The position numbers were made by a program, and so were the translations under genes. Shown in pieces: positions 4,337 to 37,500 of a DNA stretch of 64,000 bases (positions are counted from its first letter, which is position 1; each line of letters opens with the position of its first letter). The stretch comes from Rhodosorus marinus CCMP1338 (lineage: Eukaryota; Plantae; Rhodophyta), in the NCBI GenBank assembly GCA_029953675.1, contig JAMWBK010000013.1, forward strand, positions 62,001-126,000, in the 5' to 3' direction. The notes beneath the pieces were generated by a model. That model had not been told where the DNA came from, searched no databases, and saw only the letters and a list, made by a program, of their open reading frames with translations.

Positions 4337-4360
4337 ATTAATAAAGCAGATTAATTATCT

Positions 4361-12013: not shown

Positions 12014-12216
12014 AGATCGAGTCCCGAGACGGAAAATAGGTCAGGAAAATATGGAGTCCATGTTGCATGCTCTCGTCCCTAGTACCTAGTTCACTTTCCG
12101 ACCTGGGTAGCGCTTAAGGATATTTTAGTAAACCACCATGTTGAAAACCAAGTTGCTAACGTAACTCCAGACTAACCAAACCAAATCCAAGCCAAGCAGC
12201 CAAAAGCCTTCTGCTC

Positions 12217-12700
12217 TTGTATAGACGACCGAGGATCCGGTCAATCTTCCACCCCTGCTCTTGCGTCTCTATGACGGACTGCAAAGAGGGTTGTTTCAGT
12301 CGGTTGCATGCTGTGCTAGAAAAGAGTATCGATACAAGATCCGTTTCTGGAGTAAACTGGTTTTGGGGGTCGCAACGAGGCCGAGAGTGGAATCTATCGT
12401 CGACACATTGGGGCACACGATTAGACGAACCACTTGCTCCGGCATCGGCACCTGATAGGGACCTGATAAGGGCTCAGATGGCTCTACCCTTGCGCCTGGG
12501 GTTACTTTGGAGTGGGTGACTGGCGTCTTGTCTGCTCGACTGCGACGGTGGCTTCCTGGGCCACCGCTGTTCATACCCTTGTGGGATTTAGGTTCCGCAG
12601 TGCCTGCCTTTGGACTTCGTAACTGACGAACGATGACCCAGCAAACCTTCCGCAGCCGCTACTGTGCATCAACGACAGTGTGCAACAGGTGTTTCGTCGG
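12217..12700 (+). mobile_element. Family B RT thumb-region relic
   Basis: Matches 2100-2600 (RAQMALPLRLG). Confidence 0.8.
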
Positions 12701-12984
12701 TGAAATACCGTGCCAAAAGACAATCGATCTATCCTTCGGCTAGAGTTCTAAAATATAGAAATATATAGTATTATATAGAGAAGAACTGGAATTATTTGAA
12801 GTTTGATGAAGAATATTATAGACAATATGTTCATGTTTTGGGAAGAGGTTACTGTCAGGGCGGGCCAAGCTGATTTTTAGGCTTAATCAAATTAGAACCG
12901 GATATTGGAACCCATGTCCAATATCAACTTCTGGAAGGAGTTGCTATGGGGATGCAATGAGGCTGTAGCGGAATCTATGGTTAG

Positions 12985-13275
12985 GCTCCGCGCCCAAGGG
13001 AGCGGGGCTCGGGGAGACCCCAACCATCACAAGAGAGTGTGGTGAGGAAACTTTCCACCACAGAACCCCGGCCAAAAACCAACCCGGCCCAACCCGAAAA
13101 GACAAGGACCGCACAACGAACCCGCACCAAGAAGAGAGAAAGCCCCAGGTGCAAACCACAATACGCGAAACAGCGGGGGGAAGGGCAACCAAAGAAAGCG
13201 CCTCCCACGGAAGAACACAATCGTGACCGAAAACGACTCAAAACTCGAACCTCGAGAGCTCAAAAGCCAAAACCC
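12985..13275 (-). mobile_element. RLE element 5' UTR and ORF1 start (MVGVSPSP...)
   Basis: Similar to 4380-4640. Its 5' 27 nt match 26013-26039. Confidence 0.65.
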
Positions 13276-14860: not shown

Positions 14861-15713
14861 AGGTACAGGAATGGCAGTTGGTCGGGTCGCAGGGTTACGT
14901 TTGTTAAGAATGCGATGCTAATAAAGCCGGTTAAGGAGGTTAAGGAGACAGCGAGGTCAGAAAATCACGAAAAAAGACGCTCGCGCTAGGCGGAGAGGGC
15001 ATCGGCGACAGGACGGACACAGGCGAGCGCGGACAGCGGAAGAGGAATCAGAAATCAGGCGCCTGTGAGGCCAGAAGGCGTTTGGCAGGCGACTGCAGTA
15101 GGTAGGATTAGGAATGGCCAAGGTTGAACGCTCCGGAAGATTGATGGCAGGTACGCCGTCAGCATTGGCAGGCAGTTCTCTTGCCAAGCAACAGCAAGAA
15201 GACTGGTCAGTTTCTAGATTGTCGCTTGCGACGACGCTTCGTCGCAGTTGATGAGGGTGGCTCTTGTTCTGAATGAGTCCACCCGCACTTCCAAGATCGC
15301 GTTGGGGAGGCTTTTGGTCCATTACGCGAAAGACGTTCAGATATGTAAGACTTCACTCTACAAAAGCCAACTCTAGATTGCAACAGTTTTACAGAGCTAA
15401 CGATTGTACATCCATGGAGTCGATCACCCAAACATGTAGGCATTGTCCGGGATTACGTTAGTCAGGGGTTAATTGTGTGACTAAGCACACGGATATCGTG
15501 ATTGAGTCCATGGTTGTGCTGCCATCTGTTGTTGTGAAATTTCTGCCCGCAATGACCGTCAATATCCTCTCTTTATTGAAAATCGGATCAAACAACACAG
15601 TGCTAGTCGATGTGTGTTTATGCGCTTGGGGAAATGTGTGCACTTCAAATTCGGCGTCTGGTGAACCACTATCGACGAATTCTAAGAGAAGTACTGAACG
15701 GCATCGTTAACCG

Positions 15714-16703
15714 CTAATCCTTGCACCCCTTGTACAGCGCGGCGTCAAGAGAAGCGACGCAGAGAGGAGGGGTCCTCGGTTTGCGCTTGTCGCCCACCTT
15801 GCAGTATTTGCATTTCCCGTCTTTGCTGGCGTGCTCACATTTCTTGCTGCAAGGGTGTGGTTCTGCAAAGTGCACTGAGCACTTCTTAGTAACTCTGGTG
15901 CAGAAGCCGTTGCCCTTTCTGCAATACGTCTTGGTCTCTGTAACATCTCCAGATCGGACCGTGTTGCTGGACTCCTCGACACCTGGCTTGCACTTCTCGC
16001 AGTCGGTGTTGATGATCTTCTCGAACTCATTACAGACCGGACCACCTCCGCTGAGATCACAGCCCTCTTCAATCTTGATCTTGACGTTGCGGAAGCTTCT
16101 GTCTGAGACAATGCACTTGTCCGACTCAGCGTTCCTGCACTGATATGGGTATCCCTTAGGGACGGTTGGATCCGAAGCAATGATCTGTTTCCAGTTCTTC
16201 GTCGAATCTCCGCACGTCAGTGTGAGACTATCAAGTCTCTCCGCCTGAGAGCAAAACTCACTTTCAACAGCTTTCTGCATAAGATCCGACTTCAGCGTAT
16301 CCATAACACACTCAGGAATGTCTCCACGCCATACTTCTGGGCAGTTGCAGACTATGCATTCCATTCCATGCCTCAAGCCCCGGTCCAAGTTGCAAGTAAT
16401 GTCAACATAGAAAGTCTTCTTCTTGATGGTGCCCGTATGGCATTGGTTTTTACATCCAACACAGTTGTTGCAAGTCACCAGGTTACACTGAGCGTCACAG
16501 CACTGCGTGCAGTTCTCCTCGGGGTCACACTCCTTTATGAAAGGTCCTTTAACACATCCAGGTACTGACTTTTTGCAGTAGGCGCTTTTTTGACTCATGA
16601 CGCAAGTTCCGTCGTCTTCGGTCGCGTTCACTTCATTCTGGCCGTGAGCCGTAAGAGCGGCAGCTAGTAGCACAAACACGATTACGCCGTGTCCAGCTTT
16701 CAT
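15714..16703 (-). CDS. Secreted cysteine-rich protein of unknown function (329 aa, about 34 Cys); intronless
   Basis: ATG, signal-peptide-like leader VIVFVLLAAALTAHG, uninterrupted Cys-rich ORF. Confidence 0.8.
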   Translation of the reverse strand: MKAGHGVIVFVLLAAALTAHGQNEVNATEDDGTCVMSQKSAYCKKSVPGCVKGPFIKECDPEENCTQCCDAQCNLVTCNNCVGCKNQCHTGTIKKKTFYVDITCNLDRGLRHGMECIVCNCPEVWRGDIPECVMDTLKSDLMQKAVESEFCSQAERLDSLTLTCGDSTKNWKQIIASDPTVPKGYPYQCRNAESDKCIVSDRSFRNVKIKIEEGCDLSGGGPVCNEFEKIINTDCEKCKPGVEESSNTVRSGDVTETKTYCRKGNGFCTRVTKKCSVHFAEPHPCSKKCEHASKDGKCKYCKVGDKRKPRTPPLCVASLDAALYKGCKD

Positions 16704-20549: not shown

Positions 20550-22450
20550 AGGACTACCTTTATTTGGTAGTGGTTCGACTAACTTGGGCTTGGCCGGACG
20601 TTTACCTGTGCTGTCTGCGGGCAACCACACGACGTACGTGGAATCCAGCGGCTCCAACACTGCCGGACATCGTCTGGGATGAGAACTAAACGACATGAGC
20701 TCAAGCCTATGGAAATGTTTTACTGAGCATCCTGTTGTATACTTGGAGCTTTTGCGGCGTTTAAGTGTCCCTCTGTGGCGAGGCGATTTTCGAGTAGCAT
20801 GCTTGCCGAGGCGCGCCATAGGTGCCTGGGTTTCACGCTTCCCTACCTAGTTCTTAGTTCCTTTTCATGACTTGCGTAGCGCTTCAGGCTATGCTAATAA
20901 AGTCAGTAAAGCCACCATCTAAAGGAAATCTGGTGTTCTTATCGATCGTGAAGGTGCGCAGTCGCGCAGTCCAAACCCGACTTCTCCACGTGACCAAAGC
21001 TTTCCACAATGAAAGGCTGGAACCAGTGGGAGCGACCCTCTGCGCGAGGCAGACTGGCCATATACTCTCAGCATACCGTCGCTTTACTCGGCTTTACTAG
21101 GCTTTATTGGCATAGCCTAAAACGCTAAGCAAGCCGTGAAAAGGAACTAAGAACTAGGTAGGGAAGCGTGCAAACCCAGGCGCCGTTTTTCAAAGATACT
21201 CGGCTTTACTCGTTTACCGGCTTTATTGGCTTTATTAGCAACTGGCTTTATTAGCAGAGCCTACAGCGCTACGCAAACCGTGAAAAGGAACTAAGAGCTA
21301 GGTAGGGAAGCGTGCAAGCCCAAGCGCTTTACTAGCATACCCTGAAGCGCTACGCAAGGCATGAAAGTTAAGAACTAGGGAAAGAAGTAGCATTACTAGC
21401 GTACCTAAACCGCGACATCCTATTCCGACTGTACAAAATTCATTCATTTTCTTTGGAGGGGTGGCCGCTCCTTGCCTTTAGACAGACTTTATCTTTCGGA
21501 TGGTGGCTTTACTTACATAGCCTGAACCGCTGCGCACTAGTCAGACTAAACAAAAAATTCGTTCATTTGGATGGGTGGCCGCTCCTTTCCTTTAGATAGA
21601 CTTTGTCTTTGAGATGGATGGATTTACTTGTTGTAAAACGCGCTGACTTGATCCGACCTTTATTTCAAACCTTCGTTATGAGAACTACGACCTAAATGTA
21701 CAAGCTTATTGGAATCCTTTCGGCAATATCTGATGAAACTTCGCGTTCCAAAATCGTCGGAGAAAGAGGGTTCGACACGATCAATTCCGCGTTCGTGAAA
21801 CTCCTTCCCGGTAACCGTTCTATGCGATTCGATGGTGAAGCTCTCACCAACACGCAATAGATACAATCCACTTAAGAACTCACCCGTCTCAAGAATTTCA
21901 AGTTTTGCCTTTACTGCAAATCTCTCTTCTTCCTACTTTTCCATCTATCCCCTCAGTAGTGTCTATCAATACTCGGACTTGGGATATTATACCAAGTCCA
22001 TATGTCGCTGATCGACGTTCGCTATGATTCATCATGCATATAGAGAAGCCACTAAATCGAGAGTGGCAGTCTGCCACACCCAGAAATTATCACTATTCAA
22101 TGCCGGAGCCAGAATTCCAACATCACTGGTTTTTATTGGCTTGGCCAAAAGCGCTACGCAAGGCGTGAAAAGGAACTAAGAACTAGGTAGGGAAGCGTGC
22201 AAACCCAGGCGCCGATGGCGCGCCTCGGCAAGCATGCTGCTAGCATATCGGCACAGAGAGACACTTAAACGGCGTAGTGTTCCAAGTATTTGGCTCAGCG
22301 AAACATTTCCGCAACCACTCCAAACCCGTCTTCGCCACGTGAGCAAAGCTTTCCACAATGAAAAGGCTGGAACTGGTGGGAAACCGACCCTCTGCGCGGG
22401 GCAGACTGGCCATACTCTCAGCATACCGTCGTTCCTAACTTGCACCCGAT
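20550..22450. mobile_element. Cluster of family B 3'-end fragments in both orientations, with (A[A/G]TAAAGCC)n tails
   Basis: cttccctacctagttcttagttccttttca recurs at 20838(+), 21140, 21290, 22170 and 24970 (-). Confidence 0.8.
21642..21930. repeat. Dispersed repeat of about 290 bp, second copy at 38168-38455
   Basis: Direct collinear similarity by eye. No protein family recognised. Confidence 0.85.
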
Positions 22451-23408: not shown

Positions 23409-24323
23409 CGAACGAATGGTTTAATCGGAGGCTGAAAAAAAAAAACCCCGAGGGGAAAAAAAGACTAAGCGCGGCGAAGTACTCGCGCCTCCAACATCAA
23501 AGCGGCATTCATGCGCCACAGCAGGAAACTTAAGCGGGTAAACAACGATTGAAGACGGTCAGGGCGTTCGCGGAACAACTCCCGAAGCCAGCGAGAACCA
23601 ACAGAGTCCATGAACCCAAAGCACTCAATGATCAGGGGTACCAAGCGATGTGCTAGTGCCGAAGCACGAACACCAGGGGAAGACAAAGCCCCCGCGTATT
23701 TGATCTCTTTGCGGCGTCTCATTCTGGCGGCGGCAGATCCACGGCGCTCCCCCGCAGCCGGGAGATAACGACTAGCTTGAGGGTTAGGAACAGCAAGATC
23801 AACGTATGTGGTACGGCGGCTGTCGTCACAGGTGATCACCAGGTCGGCTACACGGCGTTCATCATTTTGAAAGTCCGCGACGGGTAAAGGTTTCTCACGT
23901 TCGATTTCCAGACCGGCTTGCCGAGCTATAGGCCGAAGTTCCCGGTATAACAGGTTCAAGATCCGTGTGTGGCGGCGGGTTGGAGCACCTTTCACCGCCG
24001 GGCAACTAGCGAGCAGGTGGGCGCCAAAATCTGCGTTGTCTTCAGTCTGAGAGCAGAGAGGGCACGACGAACCCATCTCGTACGGCCAAGGGGGCTGATG
24101 TAAGCCGAGGTATAAGCGCAGTGAAGTACGCACTTCGAAATCCGACAGTGTGAGTGGCGGAAAGGCTGGTACGGTCATGAGCCACTGAGAGCTAATAACC
24201 CCTCCAAGACTACGTAGGCGGGCGCGAGCGCGAGAAGATGAGACCATCTGCGCGAGGAGTCGGCCATATGCAGCACGGTGCAAGTCCCAAGAAAGAATAT
24301 TTTGCAGCGCATCCGTGCGTGCG
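23409..24323 (-). mobile_element. 5'-truncated family C RLE element (about 0.9 kb), near-identical to the 6287 copy
   Basis: ORF 23465-24283 and the same 3' UTR and tail. No TSD found. Confidence 0.95.
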
Positions 24324-24699
24324 ATAATCCTATTCAGGCCACCCTCAGAAATCTACCTCATCGTGACTTTATTCTATATTTTCATTGAGGTGTGGATCGA
24401 AGGTGGATCTACGCTTGAAATATTTAATAAATTATTGGAAAGTCTTTATCTATTTATAGAAGTCTCGGCGCGGCGAAATCGATTATAGGGGATGGACAGC
24501 GTATGGAAGGATACAATTCAACTTATCAACCACTACGCTTTCAAAATTGCTCTGCATAAATCGAGAATTCGCCCTCGAACGACTGGACGAAGCCATCGAT
24601 GTGCAGGGGATTCGAACCAACCAGTCAACAGCGGAATACCCTGAAAAGGGAATCTCACCACTTTGCGCTATTCACTGCCCGAAAAACTCTCAGCAAGAC

Positions 24700-26039
24700 G
24701 GTCTTAAAATTGAACGTGAGAAGCCTCTGCCTGTCGCAGACTACCAAAATGGCGCAAGGCCGGGTGGCTGACCTCGTGGTCACCGGTGATGATGGCAGCC
24801 GTACGACGTTACGTTCGTCTTGCTGTCCTAATCCTCGCGCAAGTCGTTTTTTTCCGGCTTCGGGAGTTGTTCCGCGAACGCCCTGACGGTCTTTCCTCGC
24901 TATTTAGTGGTGGTGGTTTTACTGGCTGGCTCTACTAGCATAGCCTGAAGCGCTACGCAAGGCGCTGAAAAGGAACTAAGAAATAGGTAGGGAAGCGTGC
25001 AAACCCAGGCGCCTTTGGCGCGCTTCGACAAGCATGCTGCTCGAATATCGCCGCAGAGAGACACTTAAACGCCGCAAAAATCCAAGTATTCAACAGGACG
25101 CTCGGTAAAACATTTCCGCAACCACTCCAAACCCGAATTCTTCACGTGACCAAAGCTTTCCACAATGAAAGGCTGGAACCGGTGGGAGCGACCCTCAGCG
25201 CGAGGCAGACTGGCCATACTCTCAGCATACCGTCGTTCTTTCTCGCGGCGAAGGGCCGAAGCCGCTGCTCCCCGGCGGCGGGCGGCAGCCGTGAGATGGG
25301 CGCTTGCCACAGGGCATGTAATCGCGAGGTCAACATGCTGAGTGTCTGGCGGCTGCATCTGAGACGAGGAGATCTGCGGTACAGCGGGGCGGTGCCGTGT
25401 CCGAGACCGATCTGGATAGTTCCGATTCCACCTCAACCGTATGCCCTACCTGAGTCAAACATTCGCTGAGAATGTACTTGAAGCGAGTGTGACGCCTCGT
25501 ACGAAGACCTCTCAACAGTCCGCATGAACCTAAGAAGTAGTAACCACAAGCATCGAACCGACTCTCACATCCCTGACGGAAAGACGGCCGATTAGGTGCC
25601 ACGGAGCTTGTGGCAAACCCAGATAGATCCGTGCAGCAGAGCCGAACTGAAAGGCATCGAGACGGTGGCCCAGTGACGAAGGCAGCGTGGTTAACCACAA
25701 GTGCGACAGGTTGCCTCCCATGCCGCGGGGTCGAGCGGCGGTGGTAGTCGGTGTGAGGGGAAAGTTGAGCAAGATTGCGTGAGCGGCACTGTGTTGGCCC
25801 CAGGGGAGGCTATGTTGAATCACATCAGTGCGCGAGCTCCATAATCGGCTCAGACCCCTTTTTACTGGACTTACACAGCCTGATGCTCTACGCAAAACGT
25901 AAAAGCTAACTAGGGGCTAGGAAGAAGAGCATGTAAGCCCAGGCGACGGTGGCTCGCCTCGGCGAGCATGTTGCTAGAATACCGCCACAGTGCGATACTT
26001 AAACGGCGGAGGACCTCGAGAACTCAAAAGCCAAAACCC
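24700..26039. mobile_element. Nested family C (+) and family B (-) fragments
   Basis: RVADLVV at 24770 (+). Family B RLE at 25065-25500 (-), linker at 25530-25895 (-), and a 3' end at 25862-26012 (-). Confidence 0.75.
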
Positions 26040-26391
26040 AATACTTTAGTAGGGGCGGTCAGTAGTCACTGGCGAGAGGTCAAAGGCCGGATGAACTTCT
26101 ATCAGAGCTGCCTCAGCGGAGAGGAAGTCCTCTAACACCGGGCGGAGGACAGGAGGACATGAATGCCTGTTTACTCGTCACAGGGTCGGCTTATCAACTC
26201 CTTACCTCGCTTGTCGCCACCCCTGAGCCTCAGCTCTCTGCCCTTGCGGACATGAAACTGACTCATGCCCACAACTCATTGTTCGTTGACTTTGATCGCT
26301 TAGTCTGGGGTTACGTTAGTCTGGGGTTATCTGGGGTTATTGGATAAGGTTCGAAATTAAGTTTGTAGGTTTGGTTCGCCTGGGGTAAAAT

Positions 26392-27975
26392 ATGCCAAAC
26401 ACTGGCACTTCCCCTTCGTTTGGGGAGGGGAATTCGAAGAATACCGGTGCAATGAGCGGAATGCTGCCTGCCTCTCCAATTGCTGAACGAGAGGACGGGC
26501 ATGGGCCACATGATGGACTACAAGCGACTACTTTACGCCCAAAAGAACCGTGCCAGGAGGGGAGTCGGACAGAGCCTTCTACGTCATCCTCTCCCGCTAA
26601 CACGTTCCTCCACCAACTTCGAAGCTACGATCAGTGCTATCACGCCCTCGGAATTGGGGAGCAGGACATCGCGAACTTCTACAAAGCAGTCTTCAATCTC
26701 TACTCGCGAATTAACAGTACCACAGAGATACATAATGTCACCAGCCGCCTCACGGAACTTGCACAGAAGCCCCACATGTGGCAAGCTTCTGCACAGACTT
26801 CGAATCCCTCGGGAGCTTCGGCGCATCACCGGCCGACGGCGGTGGTCAATCAACTTGCGGCCGGAACGGGCTTCAATCAAGTTCCGGTCGGGACAGGTGT
26901 CCCTGCGGGTGTCCGGTTTGAGACGGCTTTCCCGGCCCTTGGGAATGACACCCCCAGACCCACCTACGCGGCGGTTTCGGCGGTAGAAGTACCAGAGAAC
27001 GGTGTAGAGACACCCATCCGCACCATGCGAAGGCCTGGGCCGCAGACGCAACATGCCGCCCTGAAGCAGTTACACGCCACAGTGGGAGGGGCCAGCTGGG
27101 GCCCTGAGACCACGCCAGTGCTTGTTACCCTCCGAAATATCCGTCCCCCACGACAGGATGAGGTGGCTGCTTCTGACTTCACTACGGTCCTCTGCCGGGC
27201 GTTGGGCATTCCCGGCTCGTATGTGGCGCATTTGGACTTTATCTTTTCACACGTGAGCCTCGTGTGCCACCCTGATGCAATTCCTCTTCTCCAAAGCGCA
27301 ATCAGCCGGGGAGTGTTCCGGACTGGGATTTTCGGATCCTTTACCATGCGACACCCCGATCGACAGGTGAGCCTGTACACCGGGCACGGTTTAGAGGCGG
27401 ATAACCTGCTGGGGTTCAACGAGCGGCAACGACTCGCCGGCGGAGATGTCAGGGCTCAAACGCTGAGACGAGCGATCGAGCAGATCATACGCATCCGCGC
27501 GCGGCTGAGCCGTCGACATCTCTCGTTTACAACTCTCGCCCGAGTGCACGAGATGCTGGACCAACGGCTTGAAAAGTTACAAGCCCTTCAACAGCAACCT
27601 GCGGTATCCAGGGAGAGCGCGGAACCCCTAACGACTGCAGCCGCACCAAACGCAGCCGCTGAAGCCTCGTCGTCTCCGGACGATGCACAGGCAGCCTGTG
27701 GGACTGTTGCCACTCAGGGTGACTCCGGTGGAACATCCCAAGTACCGCAGGATGTGGAAGAAGAGGACAATCCCCATGCGGAACTCTCGTGCAACTTGCC
27801 GGAACCTCCTCAACTTAAGCGCTCGCGCCGGTCTGCCAACGGATCTAGCACGGATGCAGAAATGACACCAGCTCCCCTCGACCCCACACCGAGCGAGAAT
27901 GGACTACAACCTGAAACTGCAGCCAATACAAACCCGTCGGTTCAGCAGGAAGCGCAGGACAACGAGCAATCATAA
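26392..27975 (+). CDS. Retrotransposon ORF1 (527 aa; putative coiled-coil + RRM-like nucleic-acid-binding region; no CCHC knuckle seen)
   Basis: Long ORF directly upstream of RT; homologous relics elsewhere in the window. The RRM-like call is inference. Confidence 0.8.
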   Translation: MPNTGTSPSFGEGNSKNTGAMSGMLPASPIAEREDGHGPHDGLQATTLRPKEPCQEGSRTEPSTSSSPANTFLHQLRSYDQCYHALGIGEQDIANFYKAVFNLYSRINSTTEIHNVTSRLTELAQKPHMWQASAQTSNPSGASAHHRPTAVVNQLAAGTGFNQVPVGTGVPAGVRFETAFPALGNDTPRPTYAAVSAVEVPENGVETPIRTMRRPGPQTQHAALKQLHATVGGASWGPETTPVLVTLRNIRPPRQDEVAASDFTTVLCRALGIPGSYVAHLDFIFSHVSLVCHPDAIPLLQSAISRGVFRTGIFGSFTMRHPDRQVSLYTGHGLEADNLLGFNERQRLAGGDVRAQTLRRAIEQIIRIRARLSRRHLSFTTLARVHEMLDQRLEKLQALQQQPAVSRESAEPLTTAAAPNAAAEASSSPDDAQAACGTVATQGDSGGTSQVPQDVEEEDNPHAELSCNLPEPPQLKRSRRSANGSSTDAEMTPAPLDPTPSENGLQPETAANTNPSVQQEAQDNEQS

Positions 27976-30900
27976 TGCCGTCCAGACGCAGGGGACGTAA
28001 ACGCCCACGAGAAGAGCCTCTGTTCTTCTCTGACCGGGAGGCCTGGATTTGCCGCTGGAACGCTTTCGTAGCTGAGATCACGGAGGAGGGGAGGCATTGG
28101 ACGCGCATCACACATTGCCCGGTGCCCACACGACGCTTCGTGCCCCGAGCACACGTTTCTACATGGAGCCGGCTTCTTCGGGCTGCCCTCGAGCTTTCTC
28201 TGGACGCGACAGCACCTCCATTAGCGAGCCTGCTTCTCGTCGGCCTTCCGGGTCTGGTCCTGGGCCACTCCACCCTTGACACAGGGGTACAGGTCGCACA
28301 TGTACTAGAAGGAGAGTTCCAGCGGGTCTGGACGGCCCTTGAGGAGAAAGCCGCCTCAATGAAACCCCCACCTACACCACACGGTGCCGAAGACGTTCGT
28401 CGACGAGTCGATGGCCGCCGCAAACAAGCACTTAAACTAGCACGACTCGGCCGCCTCTCGGATGCTGCAAGAAGACTCGAGGCCACCGAAATGGCGCCTT
28501 TCACAGCGGCTACCTGGCGGCAACTACAACAGCTCTTTCCGAGCCCCGCCAGTGTGGATTCACCGGTGGAGATTGTGGAAGCCCTCCAAGGCCTACTCAC
28601 GACGGACAACGACACACTGAAGAGGCGGTGGGATCCAAAAACGGCTGCCGACGAAGGCCTCCTCTCAATCGTGGCACGACTACCTCAAGGGACGAGCCCT
28701 GGACCGAGTGGAATGCGCGCGGAACATTTGCAAGGGGCGAACCAACAGACTCAGGTAGCACTGATTCGGGTCTTGCGCCAACTCGCCACCGCGCCCGGGC
28801 GATTCTCACCCCTTCTGCTACGAGCCTTGCGTAGCAGTAGACTTCTGCCTTTCTCGAAGCCAGCACAGGGGGGTAACTCCCAGGCCAAGGCAGGGATCCG
28901 CCCAATAGGCGTGCCGGAGGTCCTACGCAAAGTGGCAACTCAGTGGGGGCTGCGAGCGGTGATGGACCGGGTCCGCGAGCTGTTGGTGCCGTTGCAGCTG
29001 AGAATCGGGGTCAGCGGTGGCTGTGAACGGTCACTGCACGCCATCCAGGCCCACCTGTCATGTGAACCAGACTCGGTTGCACTTCGACTGGACCTCGAGA
29101 ACGCCTTTAACCGCATTGATAGGCGAATTGCCAAGAAACTGGTGGCCCAGCACTTCCCTGAGCTCACAGCGGTGTATAGGCTCGGATATGGAGGCGATGG
29201 GGAAACACCGACGACTTGTGGATGGCGGACGACGCAAGAAGACAACCACCTGCACAAGGACAGACTGACGCTGCAAGCAGAAACCGGAGTACAACAAGGC
29301 GACCCTTTAGGTCCGGTGCTACATGCGCTCTCCCTGGCCCCTTTTCTCAAGGCACTCAGCAACAAGTTTCAGGGAGTCACGATCGTCGCCATCCATGACG
29401 ACATCACTCTGGTCGGCGCATTGCCCATATTGAAGGAGGCTCTCCAATGGGGACAGACCCTGCTACCGTGCCTTGGAGCCCGCCTGCAGCTCAGCAAATG
29501 CAGCCTTTATGGTCGATCCCTCACCACTACACGCTTGGTGAACCGTGCGATTCCCGGCGTGCAAGTGACTAGGGAAGGCCTCACAATCCACTCCATCCCC
29601 ATCGGCACTCGGCAGTACATCGAGCACGAGTGTAGACGGCTGCAGAACAAACACGAGACGCTTTTCAAGGAGATTTCGAGCCTGCCAACCGAGGAACTGC
29701 CTATCCAGCTTGCGCTTTACAGGTATTGCGCTGAAACGAGGTTGGATTACACCTTGCGATGCCTTGCCTACCCGTTTGGACGAGCTCTGGCCAGGGAAGC
29801 GGACAGTATGAGCAGATACCACTTAGAGGTCTTGTTTGGTGGCCTCTGCACGACGGCCTTGGTCGAGGATGAGCTGATACACCCGGTCAACGAGCAGATT
29901 TCGTTGCCCTGCCGATGGGGCGGATTGGGGTTCGCGACCCGTGCAAGAATACAGCCGATTGCGTTCTTCTCGGCCTGGGCGCAGACCCTGAGAGACCATG
30001 CGGGTCAGTGGCCCTATATAACGGAGGTGGAGCGACAGGTCAGGCAAGGTGGCGACATACACATCAGCCACCTAGGCCGACTGCAGGTGTCAACGGAGAC
30101 GATCGGTGAGCAAATCCGCGCGTCTAGTCGTGCTATAGAGCGGAGACTGTGCCCAGACACGCCGCCGCGGATCCGGAGACTGGCCAAGCTGCCCGAATTG
30201 AGAGACGAAGCCGCACCTGAAGTAGCGGACTCCCCTCGCGATTGGAACCATGGTTCAATACAACAAACCCTCTCTAGGGAGGCACACCATCGCGCGTTCC
30301 AACGTTTGGTCGGCAACGAGGGCGTTTCGCATGAACACCGTGCAAGAATCCGATCGGCGGCCGGCTCGGGTTCGGGGGTATGGCTGCGGGAACTACCGTT
30401 GCTAGAGCCGAGAAAGCTGGACTCACAGGAATTGCAGGTAAATGTTCGACAACTGCTGGGGCTGCCGATTCCGGGGTTGCGGACAACGGAGCAGTGCACC
30501 AGTTGCCGTAGGAAACATGGCCCAAATGGGGTGCAACGATTTCAACACTGTCCAACATCGACGGGACTATGGCAGAGACGGCACGACGAGCTCTGTACGG
30601 AGCTAGGGAGATGGCTCAACCGATGGAATTTTCTTGACATACAGCAAGAACCGCAGAGGTATTTTGAGAATTACCAGCTGCGACCAGATATCGTGGCGAC
30701 CCATCCAAAGACCTTTCAAAAGTACGCGATCGATGTGACGGTGATTTCACCGCTACAGGAAAAGTACATAAGGCGTGGCAGTGCAGAAAACGGGTATGCA
30801 GCGAAACTGGCGGAGAACTACAAGCTCGCGCACTATAAAGAGGCGATGAGTGTGGAAAAGCCCGAGGAGAAGTTCATCCCGATCGCGATAGAGACCTTTG

Positions 30901-31112
30901 GGCGGAGCGGGAGGTTGACGCAAGACTTTTTGCGGGACAGTTGTAAACACTTGTTGCATCGAGATGAGGAGCTGAGGGATGCACGATCCCAGTTAAACAG
31001 GATCCTATGGCAGGGCAACGCGGCGATTGCGCTTGGCGCTCTACGTGCGGACCAGTTGGAGAACCCACTGGTTCCTGTTTTTTCTTTTGAACGTAGCATG
31101 AGACCCCGGTAG
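27975..31112 (+). CDS. ORF2: reverse transcriptase + CCHC-type zinc finger + restriction-like endonuclease (1045 aa)
   Basis: RT: SPGPSG, IRPIGVPEVLRK, LDLENAFN, GVQQGDPLGP, IHDD, LPCRWGGLG. Zinc finger: CTSC..HC..RRHD. RLE: RPDIV, AIDVTV, KLAHY, FIPIAIETFG. Confidence 0.95.
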   Translation: MPSRRRGRKRPREEPLFFSDREAWICRWNAFVAEITEEGRHWTRITHCPVPTRRFVPRAHVSTWSRLLRAALELSLDATAPPLASLLLVGLPGLVLGHSTLDTGVQVAHVLEGEFQRVWTALEEKAASMKPPPTPHGAEDVRRRVDGRRKQALKLARLGRLSDAARRLEATEMAPFTAATWRQLQQLFPSPASVDSPVEIVEALQGLLTTDNDTLKRRWDPKTAADEGLLSIVARLPQGTSPGPSGMRAEHLQGANQQTQVALIRVLRQLATAPGRFSPLLLRALRSSRLLPFSKPAQGGNSQAKAGIRPIGVPEVLRKVATQWGLRAVMDRVRELLVPLQLRIGVSGGCERSLHAIQAHLSCEPDSVALRLDLENAFNRIDRRIAKKLVAQHFPELTAVYRLGYGGDGETPTTCGWRTTQEDNHLHKDRLTLQAETGVQQGDPLGPVLHALSLAPFLKALSNKFQGVTIVAIHDDITLVGALPILKEALQWGQTLLPCLGARLQLSKCSLYGRSLTTTRLVNRAIPGVQVTREGLTIHSIPIGTRQYIEHECRRLQNKHETLFKEISSLPTEELPIQLALYRYCAETRLDYTLRCLAYPFGRALAREADSMSRYHLEVLFGGLCTTALVEDELIHPVNEQISLPCRWGGLGFATRARIQPIAFFSAWAQTLRDHAGQWPYITEVERQVRQGGDIHISHLGRLQVSTETIGEQIRASSRAIERRLCPDTPPRIRRLAKLPELRDEAAPEVADSPRDWNHGSIQQTLSREAHHRAFQRLVGNEGVSHEHRARIRSAAGSGSGVWLRELPLLEPRKLDSQELQVNVRQLLGLPIPGLRTTEQCTSCRRKHGPNGVQRFQHCPTSTGLWQRRHDELCTELGRWLNRWNFLDIQQEPQRYFENYQLRPDIVATHPKTFQKYAIDVTVISPLQEKYIRRGSAENGYAAKLAENYKLAHYKEAMSVEKPEEKFIPIAIETFGRSGRLTQDFLRDSCKHLLHRDEELRDARSQLNRILWQGNAAIALGALRADQLENPLVPVFSFERSMRPR

Positions 31113-31169
31113 CGGGGTTGTTGTGAGTGATTCCCTAGATAGCAATCGGCTTAGTGTTACGTCGCATTA

Positions 31170-32230
31170 GGCGACTGCCCAATAAAGCTCACGGTTACGT
31201 TGACGGGGAAAACGGGCAAAGAGGCTTGAAAGTCGAGCCGCATGCCTTTGCAGTGCAATGGCGAGAGCTTTCGTGCAGGGGTGGCTCTGTAGCGCCGACG
31301 GGGGAACCCAACCTGCGTCGAAGCGGTCAAATTCAACAAGCAATGAGCTGCGGGAACGAGTCAGTATCATGTTCGCAAGGGCAGAGGGCTGAGGTTCAGG
31401 GGTGGCGACAAGCGAGGTAATGAATTGATAAGTCGACTCTGTGACGAGTAAACAGGCGTGAGGCTAAGTGGAATCCACGTAGAGGAACTCAGATGGAGCT
31501 ACCCCAAGTGAGGTGGCCATCGTATCAAGGAATTCAGCGTAGAGAGCTGGCGAGGGAATTCAGGGTTTTTCACGGGGAAACCTTATACGCACCATGGCCG
31601 TCATCCGTTGTTCAGAGGAGCCCCGCGAAGGACCTGGGAGTAGGAGGGCCGAGAGACACTCGCAGGAGCAAGATTCAGCCCCAAGCAAAGCCCTGGGGGC
31701 TTTTGGCCGGAGAGTAGGGGAGGTACAGCAGAATTGGGGATGGTCTGGGCGGAGCGCTCTGGACGACCGAAGGCAGGGCGGGGTGCAGAGCTCCCCCAAG
31801 CAGTAGCGGTATGGGGGAGGACGGAGAACGCGGTACTAGGAAAGTTCTCCAGATAAGCTGTTAACGTCGGCAGGGGGTCCTCCTGGGAACCAACGACAAG
31901 AGGGCTTGTCAGTTTGGAGACAAGTCGTGCCGCGACGACGCGTCGCGGCAGTTACTGAGAGTGGCATGGGCGCTGAATGCACACCCACGGGCAGCTCCAC
32001 GAGCTGAGAGACGGCAGCACCAGTCACCGGAAGAGGTGGGGAAGCCCCAGCCATAATAAAAGAGTGTGACGAGGAGAAGTTTCAGCACAAAACCCCCACA
32101 AGAACGGGCGAATACCCAATACAAAGTACCCCGAAACCTCCAACAACCCCATCGGAAGGAGAGAAAGCCCGCAGACAAGCCACAACACACCCCAAAAACC
32201 TGAGGGAAAGACGACAGAGGGTAGCGCCTC
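31170..32230 (-). mobile_element. Degenerate 5' UTR + ORF1 of a family B/C-type element
   Basis: RPSYSQVLR and VRIRFPRE..DTMATSLGVAPSEFLYVD..HACLLV align to intact ORF1 LRNIRPPR..VLCRALGIPGSYVAHLDF.FSHVSLV. Confidence 0.7.
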
Positions 32231-32254
32231 CCACGAGGGGGGGGGGGAGGGTGC

Positions 32255-33180: not shown

Positions 33181-34931
33181 GATATGTCACCAAACCAATG
33201 CATAACACCACGTGCGCATTTTTTTTCGGATCTAAACCAATGCATAATACCACATGCGCATTTTTTTTGGATCTAACAGCGAATGAGACTATTCTGGATC
33301 AGTATCAGGCTATAGTAGCCGATCCCACCGCGTAACGCGAATTTGTGAGACTATTGCTCTTCAAATCTTCAGGTTCACATAAGATTTTTGCGATTGAATA
33401 CGGAGCTGGCCTCCGCTGGTTTGGTTGAATGAAGGTTTGGTTAATGGCGGTTTAAGTCGTTGGAAATATGAGCTAAGTGGGATGAACGTGGAGCTCAGTA
33501 ATGCCATTCAGCCCTGCTTGTACTAACGGCGCTGGGAGGCCCTGTGAATACAAAGGCTAGTTTGAAACTGAGCGCAAGCCTTGGCATGTGGAGCTAAAGA
33601 TTTTTTTGATCGACATTCGCCGGGCAGGTAGTCATTTTTTCCCCTTTCAGTCTCCGATTAAACAAATTCATTTCTAAGAAAGCTAAAACATATGGAAAGT
33701 AGGGAGTCCCTGCGAACGCAAGTATGGGGAGCTGTAATCAGAGATGGTAAGCATACGTGTAGGCGAAAGGCCCATACTGGAACAAGGATACGAACAAAAG
33801 ATAATTCGTCCGGTCGCACCACACCAAGTGACTTTCCACCGACGAGGCGAGGCGTCGCTATCTTCGGGATGCACTCTGACGAGCTGCAAAATTCACAAAT
33901 GTTTTCAGATGGCGTAAGATGTTCAAAAGCAGCGAGCAGCCAGAAACTCATAAAAGAGAGCTACATGTCAGCACAGAACTTGTAGGTCAACGTCACATGC
34001 GATTTTCTTCATTCCCGTTTCACATCAGAAGCGTCCTGTCACAGTTTAGCCATGTGAAATGTAGCCCTAAGTTGCTCATGGTAGCCCAACATGCTACCAA
34101 GTTGCTCCCACTCTCTTAGACCTTTATGACGAATACAACTTCCTCGAAAAGGGTTGCAAGCCTTGCTCGCCTATTCCAAGCAATCAATCAATAACGACCC
34201 AAAATATTTAAAAAACAAATCCAAACGTAGCCAATTTGCTTGCACTCAATACATCAGCAAATTACTGATTGAGGTCGTTATTTTTCAGGGGGTGAGAAAT
34301 ACTATGGAGTACACCCGGTTTAAGTTAATAAACCAATAATATTAGATAAAAAATATTTTGAGAAGTATCCATTGGCTTGTATTTCAACAGCTGTCCTACA
34401 CGAAATTCTGTTCACCCTTTTGCAATTTTTCGACTATTTTTTATTTGATTGAACTTATGACCGTGCTCTCTGGGCGAGCTTTTAGGGCTACCGGGAAGAG
34501 TGGCGTCCCTTCGGGCTCCCAGGCGTTCGGACCGTAAGAAAAGATGATAGATGTTAAAGTAGATACTTTTTCAGGATTCCGATTGGTAAATGTTAAAATT
34601 AGAGACCTTGTCCGGTCCCCTTACGTTGTGTAGGTGTTCCCATCTGTGGCTGTGTATTTTCATCCTAGTCGTTTATCAAAATACAGCAGCGTTTCTAGGG
34701 TGAAGATCTGTCCATCTTTTCTTCCCGAAGACGCAGAAAATCATAGTACTAACCGATACAATCTGAGTCAACAGAAAACACCGAGTGAGAGCGCCATAGT
34801 TTTAGTAGGTATATAAATTCGAGACGACTGCAGTTCGCTTCCCGCGGCGTGGACGGTTATGAACCAGAGTGAGATCTTAGGAGTACCGACTGAGGCTCTA
34901 TGATACGGATAGGATTTTGTTCCAACAAGAG

Positions 34932-36569
34932 ATGAAATCTGGACTCGGAAGCGCGTTGTTGGTGCTTGCCATTGTTTCTGGATGCTCAGCATCGATTGGA
35001 GTGAGGTACCCATCTCGGCTATGGCCATCACGAACTGTGTACTACAGGTTCGACAGGACGGTGTCGAGGAACACACGTATGGTCATTGACGGAGCGATCC
35101 AGCAGTACAAGGATAACACGTGCCTTCAGTTTAAGAAGACCAAAAGCCGAACTCGTTCCAGTCTTTTGTTCAGATCGGTAAAGGATCTGTGCTATGACAC
35201 CAAAGTTGGTTACAAGGGGAAGCACAAAGATCATGTGGTGAACGTTTCACATGAATGCTGGGGAGGTATCAGCCTGATGAGCCAGGCGCTTCATGAGATT
35301 GGACATGCCATTGGTCTTGTGGACGAGTACAACCACCCTAACAGGTCGACCTATGCGAAAATACGTCGCAAGGCCATCTACCGACGAAAGAAGAATGAGC
35401 GTTTCTTCGAAAGAGTCTCTTGGAAGGAAGTTGACTCACAGGGGATTTCTACTTTTGACTACAAATCGGCCATGCAGTACGGTGACTTGTTCCTCTCCAA
35501 GGATGGAAAGACTCGAACAATCGAATCAAGACCTAGATTCAAGCTTGTCAAGGAGCTCAGTAAGACAGACATCAATACATTGAGCAGAATGTACAACTGT
35601 CCGCGCCCCGCGAAGAAGGGCGCCCTGCGGTTCTATGGCTTCAGAGGGATCAACCTATTCGACCCAAGAGCAAAGGATTCAGATGTGGCTCCTGCTCCGA
35701 ACTCCCTCGTCAGGATCCAAACCATCGACGCCGACGGAAAGAAGCATATCTTCAAGTCGCAGGTGAAAGAAAACGACCGGAATCCGTTTTGGGGGCCAAT
35801 CTCTCACGACTTTAGTGTCGCAGAGTTTCAGTACTTTAGAGTCGAAGTTGTTCACGTAGACGGTGATGGTAAGGAAACTGCGATTCTTCAGCGACAATTC
35901 TACAGAATCAGGCCTGGAGCGCATCTTCGCCAACTGTGTCAACCTAACAACCACTGCGAATCTAGGCTGGAGTTCACACAAGTCTGGACAGACAGAACGG
36001 ATATCTGCTTCCCCAACCCTTGTCGACACGGGAACACCTGCTTGAGCTACAAGGATGAATTCGGGAGGGATAGGTTCGATTGTGAATGTCGAGCGGGTTA
36101 CTTCGGAAGCAACTGTGCAAAGCGATACGGGCATTTGGAAGTTGAAGTGACCCGCGCTTTCAACCTGTCCAATCGTGACCAACATAGCTACCCTGAGATG
36201 GGACACTCGGATGTATACGTCTCCGTGCTCGCCATCGCACATGACGGTACAACGGCCAACGGGCAGACCGCCACGATATTTGATACGGGCAACCCCGTGT
36301 GGGAAGGTAGGAACCCCTCCTACTTTCCCCACATACTGGACTTTGGAGTTGGTCAGTGGGACAAGATCGTCGTACAGGCCTGGGATAGGGACAGTGGGAA
36401 AACGTCACAGCAGCTAACCAAAGCAACCGCAAAGGATCTTCAGAACCCGCTCAATGAGAAGTACGGGCGACAGACTTCACTCTTCTGTGACGTCCCGCGT
36501 GCCTGTAGAACAAATCCTTACGTTGAGGTTAAAGTCGGCTATTATCCTGAAGTGTATGTTGAGAATTAA
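34932..36569 (+). CDS. Secreted astacin-like zinc metalloprotease with C2-EGF-C2 tail; intronless
   Basis: Signal peptide, WP..TVYY, HEIGHAIGLVDE, Met-turn YKSAMQY, EGF CFPNPCRHGNTC..CECRAGYFGSNC, and two C2-like domains. Confidence 0.85.
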   Translation: MKSGLGSALLVLAIVSGCSASIGVRYPSRLWPSRTVYYRFDRTVSRNTRMVIDGAIQQYKDNTCLQFKKTKSRTRSSLLFRSVKDLCYDTKVGYKGKHKDHVVNVSHECWGGISLMSQALHEIGHAIGLVDEYNHPNRSTYAKIRRKAIYRRKKNERFFERVSWKEVDSQGISTFDYKSAMQYGDLFLSKDGKTRTIESRPRFKLVKELSKTDINTLSRMYNCPRPAKKGALRFYGFRGINLFDPRAKDSDVAPAPNSLVRIQTIDADGKKHIFKSQVKENDRNPFWGPISHDFSVAEFQYFRVEVVHVDGDGKETAILQRQFYRIRPGAHLRQLCQPNNHCESRLEFTQVWTDRTDICFPNPCRHGNTCLSYKDEFGRDRFDCECRAGYFGSNCAKRYGHLEVEVTRAFNLSNRDQHSYPEMGHSDVYVSVLAIAHDGTTANGQTATIFDTGNPVWEGRNPSYFPHILDFGVGQWDKIVVQAWDRDSGKTSQQLTKATAKDLQNPLNEKYGRQTSLFCDVPRACRTNPYVEVKVGYYPEVYVEN

Positions 36570-36669: not shown

Positions 36670-37500
36670 TCACGTTCCCGCCCGGTTAAGCCCGCCTTGA
36701 GTCTTTCGAGCTTTCAGAATCGTTGGCACCACGAAACTCGCAGTGTGCACGGGGACACCAAATAGAATGAAGCCCTCGGGACGCGAAATATCCTGAAGCC
36801 GAGAGGGAACCTGGGCAGCGCACAGCGGGCCTACCCAAAAGCCACACTTGGCACGCCCGCTCCTCGGCACTCCTGACGATCTTGTGCCGGCGTATTCTTT
36901 TCTCGGCGAGGTGGCGTCTCGTCTAGGCTTACCGATAAACCACGGCAAGTGTGACTTTGGGGAGGACAGCGGTCGCAGAGCACAGCGGTGCTCTGCGGCC
37001 CAGGTCCCTGCACTTTTCGTGGTTCACACTCAAGCCGAGAAGAGAAGCTACCTCGCCAAGAAAAGAATAGGCCGGCACAAAATCATCAGGAGTGCCGAGG
37101 AGCGTCGCATCGTCATGAAAGACGACCACTCGGACTCGCGGGAACTGATTCTTCACCCCCAACAACGCCAATTTCAAGCCGCGCGCGTGCAGGAACGGCC
37201 CTATGGGGTCTCCCTGTTGAACACCCATATGTGCTACAAAACTGTGGCTCTCTCTGCACCCAAGGTGACAAGGCGAGGGGAGTATAGCCCCCCCCCATAG
37301 ACGCAGCGAAAGAAACGGAAGCCAGTTGGAAAGAGCTGACGAACCACCTCAGGTGCGTGAGTACGCGACACGCTGTTGAACGCGTTCGCGAAATTCATCG
37401 AAAGCGTACCAAAGGGCTCCTCACTGAGACCATCCAGCTGTAGGATGCGAGTCACCAATTCGCAGGCCCCTGAATATCCTACACCGACCAAGGTCGACAA
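36670..37500 (-). mobile_element. RLE-class RT core relic related to family B, with an internal tandem duplication
   Basis: NFANAFNSVSR, GVQQGDPIGP, VFHDD, GLSVNHEKC. Confidence 0.85.

Follow-up and report, generated by a model that had tools for sequence, protein, structure and literature searches.

Two fold-back inverted duplications, FB1 and FB2, lie in a stretch of the genome of the red alga Rhodosorus marinus, share their geometry and carry the same short patch of sequence where one strand turns back on itself; the loop of FB2 also holds an intact non-LTR retrotransposon, element A. The stretch analysed, 64,000 nt beginning ~62 kb from the contig start, is referred to here as the window. 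The fold-backs are probably the scar of faulty copying or repair and not a new genetic system. Our preferred reading, which we hold tentatively and at somewhat less than even probability, is that FB1 and FB2 are scars left where a LINE particle of the element A type attempted, and aborted, integration into an older, decayed LINE-like copy, and that element A itself integrated much later. The two structures comprise the following features:

4338-5282, + strand: FB1 resident copy, 5′UTR and ORF (MAGVPP..., PSYVSVLRKG) up to the turn.
5283-5302, + strand: FB1 junction CAACGT-CCGG-CCCCAGACTA; the + strand reads CAACGTCCGGCCCCAGACTA.
5303-5666, - strand: FB1 fold-back arm, 94.2% identical to 4799-5163.
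26165-26301, + strand: FB2 fold-back arm (the new, inverted copy), whose + strand is ORF1 sense; 88.3% identity to 31321-31457 in reverse complement.
26301-26317, + strand: FB2 junction patch T1, TAGTCTGGGGTTACGTT, one unit of the 16-nt repeat TAGTCTGGGGTTACGT.
31202-31320, - strand: FB2 loop, native, continuing the sense arm on the - strand.
31321-31457, - strand: FB2 native arm, belonging to the resident copy.
31458-32240, - strand: rest of the FB2 resident degenerate copy, with 5′UTR, ORF start MAGASPP near 32055 and a PSYSQVLRG motif, interrupted by stops and frameshifts.

The original prediction of a second fold-back with the geometry of FB1 was borne out, with small corrections to its coordinates. 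When element A and one copy of its target-site duplication are removed, 26165-26301 pairs with 31457-31321 over 137 nt at 88.3% identity (E 2e-45; 153 nt at 85% on ungapped extension), the 16 differing positions comprising 12 transitions and 4 transversions. The loop measures 135 nt and is composed of 16 nt (26302-26317) and 119 nt (31202-31320); the FB2 arms have no further match anywhere in the window. FB1 (4799-5666) has arms at 4799-5163 and 5304-5666 that are 94.2% identical over 365 nt around a 140-nt loop. Because the arms differ by 6-12%, the fold-backs are not an assembly artefact. The outer end of the FB1 arm adjoins an inverted duplicate made up of the U2 array plus the 5′ part of the gene starting at 10016 (5663-6285 versus 10080-9459, a 93% match), and the arm is fused to a ~1-kb inverted duplicate of nontransposon DNA of the same age, 92-94% identical. 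Three U2 genes are the sole known RNAs found in the window with Rfam.

The motif CAACGT-(AA or CCGG)-CCCCAGACTA, predicted for both turns, was confirmed at both junctions. By chance this gapped pattern would be found 0.01 times per window, and the exact sequence TAGTCTGGGG occurs three times against 0.12 expected, all three at the FB1 and FB2 junctions; CAACGT itself occurs 33 times, counting both strands of the window. Across the empty FB2 site (patch T1 plus the G at 31202) the - strand reads CAACGTAACCCCAGACTA, and both patches stop beside the arm at one shared nucleotide, ...AGACTA. In FB1 the patch starts 4 nt past CAACGT, and the first-strand nick of element A, as deduced from its duplication, would likewise lie 4 nt past CAACGT. 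This offset is the one regularity in favour of endonuclease cleavage at the motif, as had been proposed. The turns fall, as claimed, at non-homologous positions of ORF1, ~40 codons (FB1) and ~140 codons (FB2) past the shared PSY(V/S)xVLR motif. Given the common geometry and a junction patch that is not due to chance, the shared mechanism put forward in the original prediction is reasonable, except for its telomere-repeat step.

Read along one strand, each fold-back consists of native 5′UTR and ORF up to the turn, the patch and then the antisense arm, and what follows the sense arm in the native copy forms the loop. A single-strand U-turn, in which native copy and patch are followed by snap-back ~120 nt upstream, is the only arrangement that fits this geometry, and it avoids a positional coincidence that two independent insertions would need twice. 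The structures have the hallmarks of fold-back inversion, namely short spacers (135 and 140 nt), a patch-like snap-back site in FB2 (weak in FB1) and distal loss: after both turns the remainder of the ORF and any ORF2 are missing, and no significant support was found for the ORF continuing past the FB2 arm (26040-26164). In FB2, 9 of 16 positions of the patch agree with native sequence adjoining the arm, which makes the snap-back point the most patch-like site within ~800 nt; FB1 offers just a weak, bulged TA.GTCT. Snap-back by microhomology, also predicted, thus agrees with the U-turn geometry and with FB2 but less well with FB1.

Homology support for the label “ORF1” in the folded sequence appears weak. 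Translations of FB1 and FB2 have no significant BLASTP match (E 0.5-7) to ORF1 of element A or of the related element on locus L118, and a profile of these two ORF1 proteins gives a 31-column alignment to the FB2 translation (E 0.039), in the register that would be expected. The FB2 resident copy is homologous to the 5′ region of FB1 and to 13011-13209, and none of the copies in the window has an ORF2 linked to this resident “ORF1”. The window contains no copy of the family at full length, and the CAACGT at the turns may be either native or part of the patch.

The patch represents a single unit of a dispersed repeat of 16 nt, matched seven times in the window against 0.29 expected, and its 13-mer TAGTCTGGGGTTA and the element A 5′ terminus are the same at 13/13 nt. 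Arrays of the unit were found at three further loci:

12156-12182, - strand: ~1.7 units, between the stop codon of the gene 10016-12013 and a 5′-truncated LINE fragment.
15443-15474, + strand: two degenerate tandem units, ~240 nt downstream of the annotated gene 15714-16703 (- strand).
45462-45502, + strand: three degenerate units that fill the 3′ half of a 96-nt GT..AG intron (45454-45549) in a kinase gene on the - strand.

As judged from these comparisons, the patch is a discrete module and not native ORF1 sequence at the inner arm end, because the resident copy differs there (it has CGACGCAGGTTGGGTT at the point where the FB2 arm goes on as AGTCTGGGGTTACGTT) and because further copies of the unit lie inside an intron, next to two genes and at the element A 5′ terminus. 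The core of the unit is G4-TTA, and three of its short interstitial arrays end at ...GGGGTTA. No array of more than three units was found in the window, and no fold-back arms were found at the remaining repeat loci. A uniform start or end phase among the arrays was looked for as a test of run-off and was not found, so run-off is not a general rule.

Several sources of the unit were considered and rejected. A spliced-leader relic of the dinoflagellate kind (TAG joined to TCTGGGGTTA, then a truncated copy) is contradicted by the orientation of the unit, which is antisense to or downstream of the nearest gene at three loci, and to our knowledge trans-splicing is not known in red algae. Derivation from a tRNA, snRNA or other known RNA was dismissed, as no tRNA was detected with ARAGORN and nothing near the junction with Rfam. 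Nor is the unit the 3′ tail of the LINEs in the window, which end instead in ...TGC[CT]AATAAAGC and a TAAAGCC-type stutter, or a general LINE target, the other insertions in the window having unrelated targets. A literature search with the 10-mer returned chance primer matches alone, and a search of metagenomes for arrays of the unit returned 116 loci, all unrelated bacterial or other repeats. Neither the genome paper nor the further literature searched gives the telomere repeat of R. marinus.

Element A occupies the FB2 loop, as had been claimed, and is flanked by a 9-bp duplication; taking out the element and one duplication copy leaves the 137-bp arms and 135-nt loop. Its limits, 26318-31192, follow from the two copies of GGTTACGTT, a 9-mer with a single further exact copy in the window, at 14893. 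The features of the element are as follows:

26309-26317, + strand: target-site duplication copy 1, GGTTACGTT, an exact 9-mer.
26318-31192, + strand: element A, a 4875-bp non-LTR retrotransposon, intact and lacking LTRs, whose 5′UTR is 74 nt long.
26318-26339, + strand: 5′ leader, AGTCTGGGGTTA plus TCTGGGGTTA; counted from the T just before it, the opening 13 nt are the same as those of patch T1.
26392-27975, + strand: ORF1, 527 aa, no Pfam domain, with a homolog (E 3e-4) in ORF1 of a two-ORF relative on locus L118.
27975-31112, + strand: ORF2, 1045 aa, reverse transcriptase, CCHC motif and PD..D..K restriction-like endonuclease.
31113-31192, + strand: 3′UTR, ending ...TGCCCAATAAAGCTCAC with no poly(A) tail; patch-like GGCTTAGTGTTACGTCGCATTAGG at 31150-31173.
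31193-31201, + strand: target-site duplication copy 2, GGTTACGTT.

The reverse transcriptase domain of ORF2 (RVT_1) scores above the curated Pfam cut-off (E 6.7e-8), its best match among solved structures is the R2 protein 9nl2 (E 3e-5), and its database homologs are distant (25-32% identity), all with RVT_1 and none from R. marinus itself. When ORF2 is aligned with two in-window copies and four database proteins, a comparison to be read at the motif level only, the C-terminus has invariant C66, C69, C84, H95 and D130 (the D of RPDIV), with (I/V)D(V/L) and K..Y after it. Pfam detects no zinc finger or Myb domain and none is visible in the N-terminal 150 residues. Candidate nick sites for ORF2 are GGGGTTACGTTG and the FB1 site. 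The ...TGC[CT]AATAAAGC 3′ end is common to element A and five other element 3′ ends; no internal or terminal repeats of element A and no second copy of it were found in the window. The ORFs of element A, together with nine other transposon ORFs, are absent from the annotated proteins.

The single insertion of element A lies within one 16-nt repeat unit, and the FB1 patch has the same CAACGT offset. All 1572 codons of element A are intact; a divergence of ~6% would be expected to bring many stop codons into its ORFs. Because its ORFs are intact and the FB2 arms are 12% diverged, element A is much younger than FB2, and because the ages differ, FB2 was not made by the insertion of element A itself; the site was reused. 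The leader of element A may be native, or may have been copied from the target during formation of the 5′ junction. Should 26301-26316 be part of element A, with GGTTACGTT no true duplication, CCCCAGACTA would be lost from the FB2 junction.

Under aborted integration, the resident sense strand would have been nicked or broken at a CAACGT site, and its 3′ end would have gained 10-17 nt, presumably templated by an RNA with the 5′ terminus UAGUCUGGGGUUA... (the element A leader), giving ...CCCCAGACTA. Run-off at an RNA 5′ end would account for both patches ending at ...AGACTA. The tailed 3′ end would then fold onto its own strand ~120 nt upstream, at partial homology to the patch, and a putative polymerase would copy the inverted arm (137 nt in FB2, 363 nt in FB1), after which the end would be joined to other DNA and the old copy past the turn lost. 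Much later, an intact element A would have entered the FB2 patch by target-primed reverse transcription, creating the 9-bp GGTTACGTT duplication, the patch having perhaps re-created a sequence preferred by the element A endonuclease or by its cDNA. We know of no target-primed reverse transcription product in which the 5′-most 10-17 nt of the RNA alone are copied. R2 proteins form snap-back junctions on their own cDNA or on nearby target DNA and perform template jumping (PMC11371274, PMC11204384). A more far-reaching version, in which a LINE reverse transcriptase copying the extreme 5′ leader of its own RNA would write the 16-nt unit onto free DNA 3′ ends in the manner of telomerase, scattering arrays of 1-3 units (including that in the branch-site half of the intron), seeding fold-backs and making its own future landing sites, we consider unlikely.

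Host repair or replication without a transposon enzyme is nearly as likely as aborted integration, although doubtful in its own right. A break or collapsed fork would be followed by fold-back priming and serial microhomology template switches of the break-induced replication or polymerase-theta type, and the patch would be a short templated insertion from an abundant nucleic acid containing the 16-nt unit. The complexity of the FB1 junction (native copy, patch, 363-nt inverted arm and the ~1-kb inverted duplicate of U2 array and gene 5′ end) fits such multi-step template switching at least as well, and its similarly diverged pieces (92-94%) resemble both ends of one break folding back before joining. 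The short loops (135-140 nt), the loss of sequence distal to the turn and the presence of the unit in nontransposon contexts point the same way. Left unexplained are the same trans template, the same end nucleotide and CAACGT at the same offset in two independent events, and the location of all three small fold-backs of the window within LINE sequence.

The alternative that telomerase healed a break with a telomere-like repeat of the species, the new end then snapping back, would account for the G4-TTA core and the short arrays, three of them ending ...GGGGTTA, and short interstitial telomeric inserts are known at repair sites in other eukaryotes. It is nevertheless improbable, as the original prediction that such a repeat was added at the break encounters the wrong polarity: in a self-templated fold-back the extended strand would comprise the native copy, CAACGT..CCCCAGACTA and the arm, and would thus have gained the C-rich strand of the patch. 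Nor can the arm have templated the longer copy, which contains the loop, and no array exceeds three units in the window. Still slightly less probable are two separate insertions, or a recombination product, that placed related copies tail-to-tail about a pre-existing 16-nt unit. An identity of 88% permits different source copies, element A itself entered such a unit, the unit at 12156-12182 has a LINE fragment ~50 nt away, and 3′ ends meet tail-to-tail at 20828-21320; however, both pieces are 3′-truncated with their truncated ends toward the unit, the opposite of target-primed insertion, they span the same 137 or 363 nt with turns ~120 nt apart in two independent loci, and priming from both strands of one unit cannot put both pieces on one strand. 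Least probable of all, and hardly credible, is that the motif is native coding sequence at both positions, the turns falling there by chance or due to the motif. The FB1 reading frame does pass through the motif (LGAQRPAPDY), and its L-G...P...Y spacing is loosely like that of FB2 and element A at the homologous place, but the two positions are non-homologous, the FB2 resident copy is unrelated at the position homologous to the FB1 turn, and the 16-nt unit also occurs outside any ORF.

Element A resembles the non-LTR group with restriction-like endonucleases (R2, NeSL, CRE/SLACS/CZAR, MoTeR) in that its reverse transcriptase is followed by a CCHC motif and a C-terminal PD..D..K endonuclease, and in having no LTRs, a short target duplication and a 5′ end that repeats target sequence. 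Spliced-leader sequence likewise occurs at the 5′ end of SLACS/CZAR, and variant telomere repeats at that of MoTeR. Unlike this group, element A carries a pair of ORFs and lacks N-terminal zinc-finger and Myb domains, its target, known from one insertion, is not rDNA, a spliced-leader gene or a shown telomere, and its ORF2 is just 25-32% identical to any database protein. The R2 clade proper is marked by N-terminal zinc-finger/Myb domains and a 28S rDNA target, neither of which element A has.

In the snap-back described for engineered R2 transgenes (PMC11371274, PMC11204384), a polymerase-made 3′ end folds back and primes DNA-templated synthesis, yielding an inverted segment. The locus 24689-24906 fits this exactly, being, by comparison with 23539-23925, a textbook cDNA snap-back beside a 5′-truncated LINE copy. 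FB1 and FB2 differ in that the inverted copy is the resident target strand, where the insert should be, in holding just 10-17 nt of “insert” (the leader), and in being tail-to-tail, not head-to-head. L1 twin priming similarly produces a LINE-associated inversion through a second priming event with junction microhomology, and places inverted 5′ and sense 3′ segments within one duplication pair with little or no sequence duplicated; in contrast, the FB1 and FB2 pieces are 3′-truncated, convergent and duplicated, have no element 3′ part, and no duplication flanks the pair. Break-repair fold-backs (microhomology-mediated break-induced replication, polymerase-theta snap-back) share the short-spacer inverted duplication, the microhomology at the turn, the distal loss and, in FB1, chained inverted templated pieces at one junction, but not the same trans-templated filler at two independent junctions, nor a filler that is a mobile element terminus. 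Interstitial telomeric inserts are comparable as short (1-3 unit) G-rich arrays at rearrangement junctions and in an intron; here, though, the unit is 16 nt long and at most a candidate telomere repeat, and the fold-back polarity is opposite to telomerase extension.

If aborted integration is the true origin, FB1 and FB2 would be natural, datable cases of retroelement-polymerase snap-back scars, so far known mainly from engineered R2 insertions, and the scar would hold the leader of the element itself and later serve as landing pad for an intact copy. This would join aborted integration, small hairpin-capable inverted duplications and target choice, which are usually treated apart. On that reading, element A would also be the first endonuclease-bearing LINE of active appearance to be described from a stylonematophycean red alga. 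Should host repair be responsible, FB1 and FB2 would be ordinary rearrangement scars in a transposon-rich region, together with an uncharacterized 16-nt dispersed repeat.

The third fold-back of the window, at 36858-37104, lies inside a reverse transcriptase domain and has no patch, a point against the aborted-integration reading. Other LINE families insert elsewhere, one of them flanked by the duplication CCAGTAT at 6279-6285 and 7117-7123.

With element A (a non-LTR retrotransposon, 26318-31192) and one copy of its 9-bp duplication removed, the second fold-back in the decayed LINE-like copies of the window (FB2) consists of 137-nt arms (26165-26301 and 31321-31457; 88.3% identity) around a loop of 135 nt, and folds as single-stranded DNA at -155 kcal/mol (z = -20). 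The first fold-back (FB1) has arms at 4799-5163 and 5304-5666 with 94.2% identity and a loop of 140 nt, bearing out the likeness in geometry that the original prediction had described. The sense strand has the same order in both: the native 5'UTR and ORF as far as the turn, then the string CAACGT-(AA or CCGG)-CCCCAGACTA, then the antisense copy. These junction strings are as previously noted and far above chance. An assembly artefact is ruled out for both fold-backs because their arms have diverged by 6-12%.

FB1, FB2 and a third fragment (13330-12985, minus strand) share a 5'UTR and the start context MAG(V/A)(P/S)PP, and the first two also share a PSY(V/S)xVLR motif. Measured from this motif, the turns lie about 40 (FB1) and about 140 (FB2) codons downstream, confirming that they occupy non-homologous positions. 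All copies of the folded family in the window end early, with no ORF2 behind any of them. Direct comparison of the FB1 and FB2 translations with ORF1 of element A was not significant, and a two-sequence ORF1 profile matched FB2 in the expected register with E = 0.039; the label ORF1 is plausible for the folded sequence on this similarity but not established. The third copy comprises the 5'UTR and 17 codons only, so that all three are 5' fragments lacking the 3' side; LINEs usually lose the 5' end instead, which makes this pattern unusual. The resident copy of FB2 (the older copy carrying the fold-back) is without about 100 nt of 5'UTR found in the other two, and 12 consecutive C, flanked by interrupted C stretches (32240-32252), lie exactly at its 5' boundary.

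The antisense arm copies a stretch whose end is about 120 nt short of the turn. Native sequence lying downstream of the sense arm makes up the loop, and the short copy therefore cannot have templated the long one. The possibility that the arms are two separate target-primed insertions, which the original prediction had allowed for, is very unlikely on this geometry: such insertions would point the opposite way and must twice have hit the homologous position to within about 120 nt, and a single target primed on both its strands cannot yield two pieces that lie on the same strand. It follows that a strand must have reached the turn, gained a short filler (the patch), and made a U-turn onto itself or its sister strand.

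The patch is a single copy of the 16-nt repeat unit TAGTCTGGGGTTACGT. That it is not native at this place is seen in FB2, whose arm goes on as AGTCTGGGGTTACGTT at the point where the resident copy has CGACGCAGGTTGGGTT. The repeat has seven matches in the window at three or fewer mismatches, against 0.29 expected, and no fold-back arms surround the following three loci:

15443-15474, two units, downstream of an annotated gene
12156-12182, about 1.7 units, between a gene stop codon and a 5'-truncated LINE fragment
45462-45502, three units, taking up the 3' half of a 96-nt GT..AG intron in a kinase gene

A metagenome scan for the repeat returned unrelated repeats only. At its 5' terminus element A carries the first 13 nt of the unit without a mismatch, followed by a second, truncated unit (TCTGGGGTTA); the 5' end of the FB1 copy resembles the unit loosely (TAACGAGTGACTGGGG, 11/16), and 3'UTRs of LINEs in the window contain related strings. 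A LINE leader or dispersed 16-nt unit better explains the filler than does a telomere repeat. Addition by telomerase is disfavoured, since it is the C-rich version of the patch that lies on the extended strand; of the mechanism originally proposed, snap-back with a common filler is supported and its telomeric source is not. The kinase intron (45454-45549, minus strand) separates APE from IAMGRTYGPEVD, and its repeat reads C-rich, giving strings that resemble a branch site (CTAAC/ACTAAC) and reach to within 8 nt of the acceptor; the 3' signals of the intron may derive from the repeat.

Element A is flanked by copies of GGTTACGTT at 26309-26317 and 31193-31201 and encodes ORF1 (527 aa) and ORF2 (1045 aa), overlapping at ATAATG, with no stops or frameshifts in 1572 codons. 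ORF2 contains a reverse-transcriptase domain, for which the sole solved-structure match is the R2 protein, and its C-terminus aligns with relatives over an invariant CCHC motif and a PD..D..K nuclease motif. The closest database relatives of ORF2 have just 25-32% identity; the nearest, on a 5022-bp ENA metagenome contig, likewise has two ORFs, the first homologous to ORF1 of element A (E 3e-4). Just upstream of its 5'UTR is a 55-nt inverted copy of its own 3' end (47-101 versus 4943-4992 of that contig; 92-93%), which could be a further snap-back-like junction or an inverted neighbor. Between the FB2 arms, 16 of the 137 positions have changed (12 transitions, 4 transversions), without directional bias. 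Because the arms have diverged to this extent while the codons of element A are intact, we infer that FB2 is much older than this copy of the element. Element A is therefore not the maker of the fold-back; it integrated into an existing patch as a later tenant of the site.

We tentatively ascribe both fold-backs to the enzymes of an element-A-type particle, a possibility that falls somewhat short of probable. A 3' end would have been extended with the patch by copying the RNA 5' end of such an element, after which the patched end would snap back and copy the inverted arm. The patch corresponds to this RNA 5' end and stops on the identical nucleotide beside the arm in FB1 and FB2, as run-off at the RNA 5' end would give. 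The FB1 patch begins 4 nt past CAACGT, as does the first-strand nick of element A deduced from its duplication. Snap-back priming by microhomology, also part of the original prediction, finds support in FB2, where nothing else within about 800 nt of the turn resembles the patch as well as the snap-back site does (9/16); in FB1 the microhomology is weak, which counts against transposon enzymes. Snap-back junctions on cDNA or nearby target DNA, and template jumps, are documented for R2-type proteins (PMC11371274, PMC11204384) and favor element-A-type enzymes here. Two further LINE-associated inverted structures occur in the window. One (24689-24906) is an inverted partial copy of 23539-23925, the endonuclease-coding region, upstream of a 5'-truncated LINE (24323-23409, minus strand), a head-to-head layout that would be expected of cDNA snap-back at a 5' junction. 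The other (36858-37104, minus strand) is a small fold-back in a LINE RT-domain fragment, with 94-nt arms (83%) and a 59-nt loop holding a perfect 9-bp hairpin; the sense ORF resumes after the inverted arm from about the arm end (duplication-inversion-duplication), and the 16-nt patch is absent.

Pure host repair without any transposon enzyme is only a little less likely as the origin, and FB1 speaks for it. At its outer end (5666) the FB1 arm runs directly into DNA that is not of transposon origin, an inverted duplicate (5663-7509 versus 10080-9075, 92-93%) similar in age to the arms. The duplicate covers a U2 snRNA unit together with the promoter and initial ∼65 bp (to 10080) of an ORF beginning at 10016 with an annotated ATG at 10043, and is interrupted by a later LINE insertion (duplication CCAGTAT). 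The fusion resembles both ends of one break folding back before joining, which host polymerases are able to do unaided. Also counting against transposon enzymes, repeat arrays elsewhere begin and end in varying phases, the leader was possibly copied from the target at the 5' junction rather than being native to element A, and we know of no described reaction that copies just the first 10-17 nt of an RNA. The fold-backs are a variant within the known range of LINE and repair scars, rather than a system of a new kind.

A mosaic of non-LTR retrotransposon fragments of several families in both orientations occupies the first 33 kb of the window, with three U2 snRNA genes embedded among them (Rfam 52-66 bits against a threshold of 46); the remainder is gene-rich. 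The window corresponds to about 62,001-126,000 of a contig in the Rhodosorus marinus assembly GCA_029953675.1. The U2 genes and the gene that supplied the annotated ATG are:

7187-7390, plus strand, U2 snRNA
8314-8517, minus strand, U2 snRNA
9193-9392, minus strand, U2 snRNA
10043-12013, gene (72043-74013 of the 1.1-Mb contig record JAMWBK010000013.1; genome paper, PMC10250338)

The U2 genes may be variants or pseudogenes, since their branch-site-binding region is unusual (AAAUGUGUUUU / AAAUAAAUGUAUCUGUUC). More nested inverted segments lie amid the U2 units at 7100-9500. The insertion with the CCAGTAT duplication is an 831-bp 5'-truncated LINE 3' fragment (6286-7116) about 70 bp upstream of a U2 gene; its paralogous site (9459-9465) is empty. 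This fragment is 98.6% identical to 23409-24238, and its last 167 bp recur at 4171-4337 with 100% identity, just upstream of the FB1 copy. One LINE family is represented by these 3' ends:

20828-21366
22132-22214
24925-25014
25859-25948

They end in ...TGC[CT]AATAAAGCC followed by stuttered TAAAGCC(N)AG units, and are arranged tail-to-tail (20895, plus strand, versus 21102, minus strand) and as stacked, very short 5'-truncated copies in head-to-tail order. Within the LINE copy at 685-3702, ORF2 contains tandem duplications of 85 bp and 131 bp (2394-2559 and 2894-3143), the 85-bp region being rearranged in a related fragment at 12224-12731. Beyond the mosaic, a single-exon ORF (34917-36569) encodes an astacin metalloprotease with EGF and C2 domains, a combination unexpected for a red alga.
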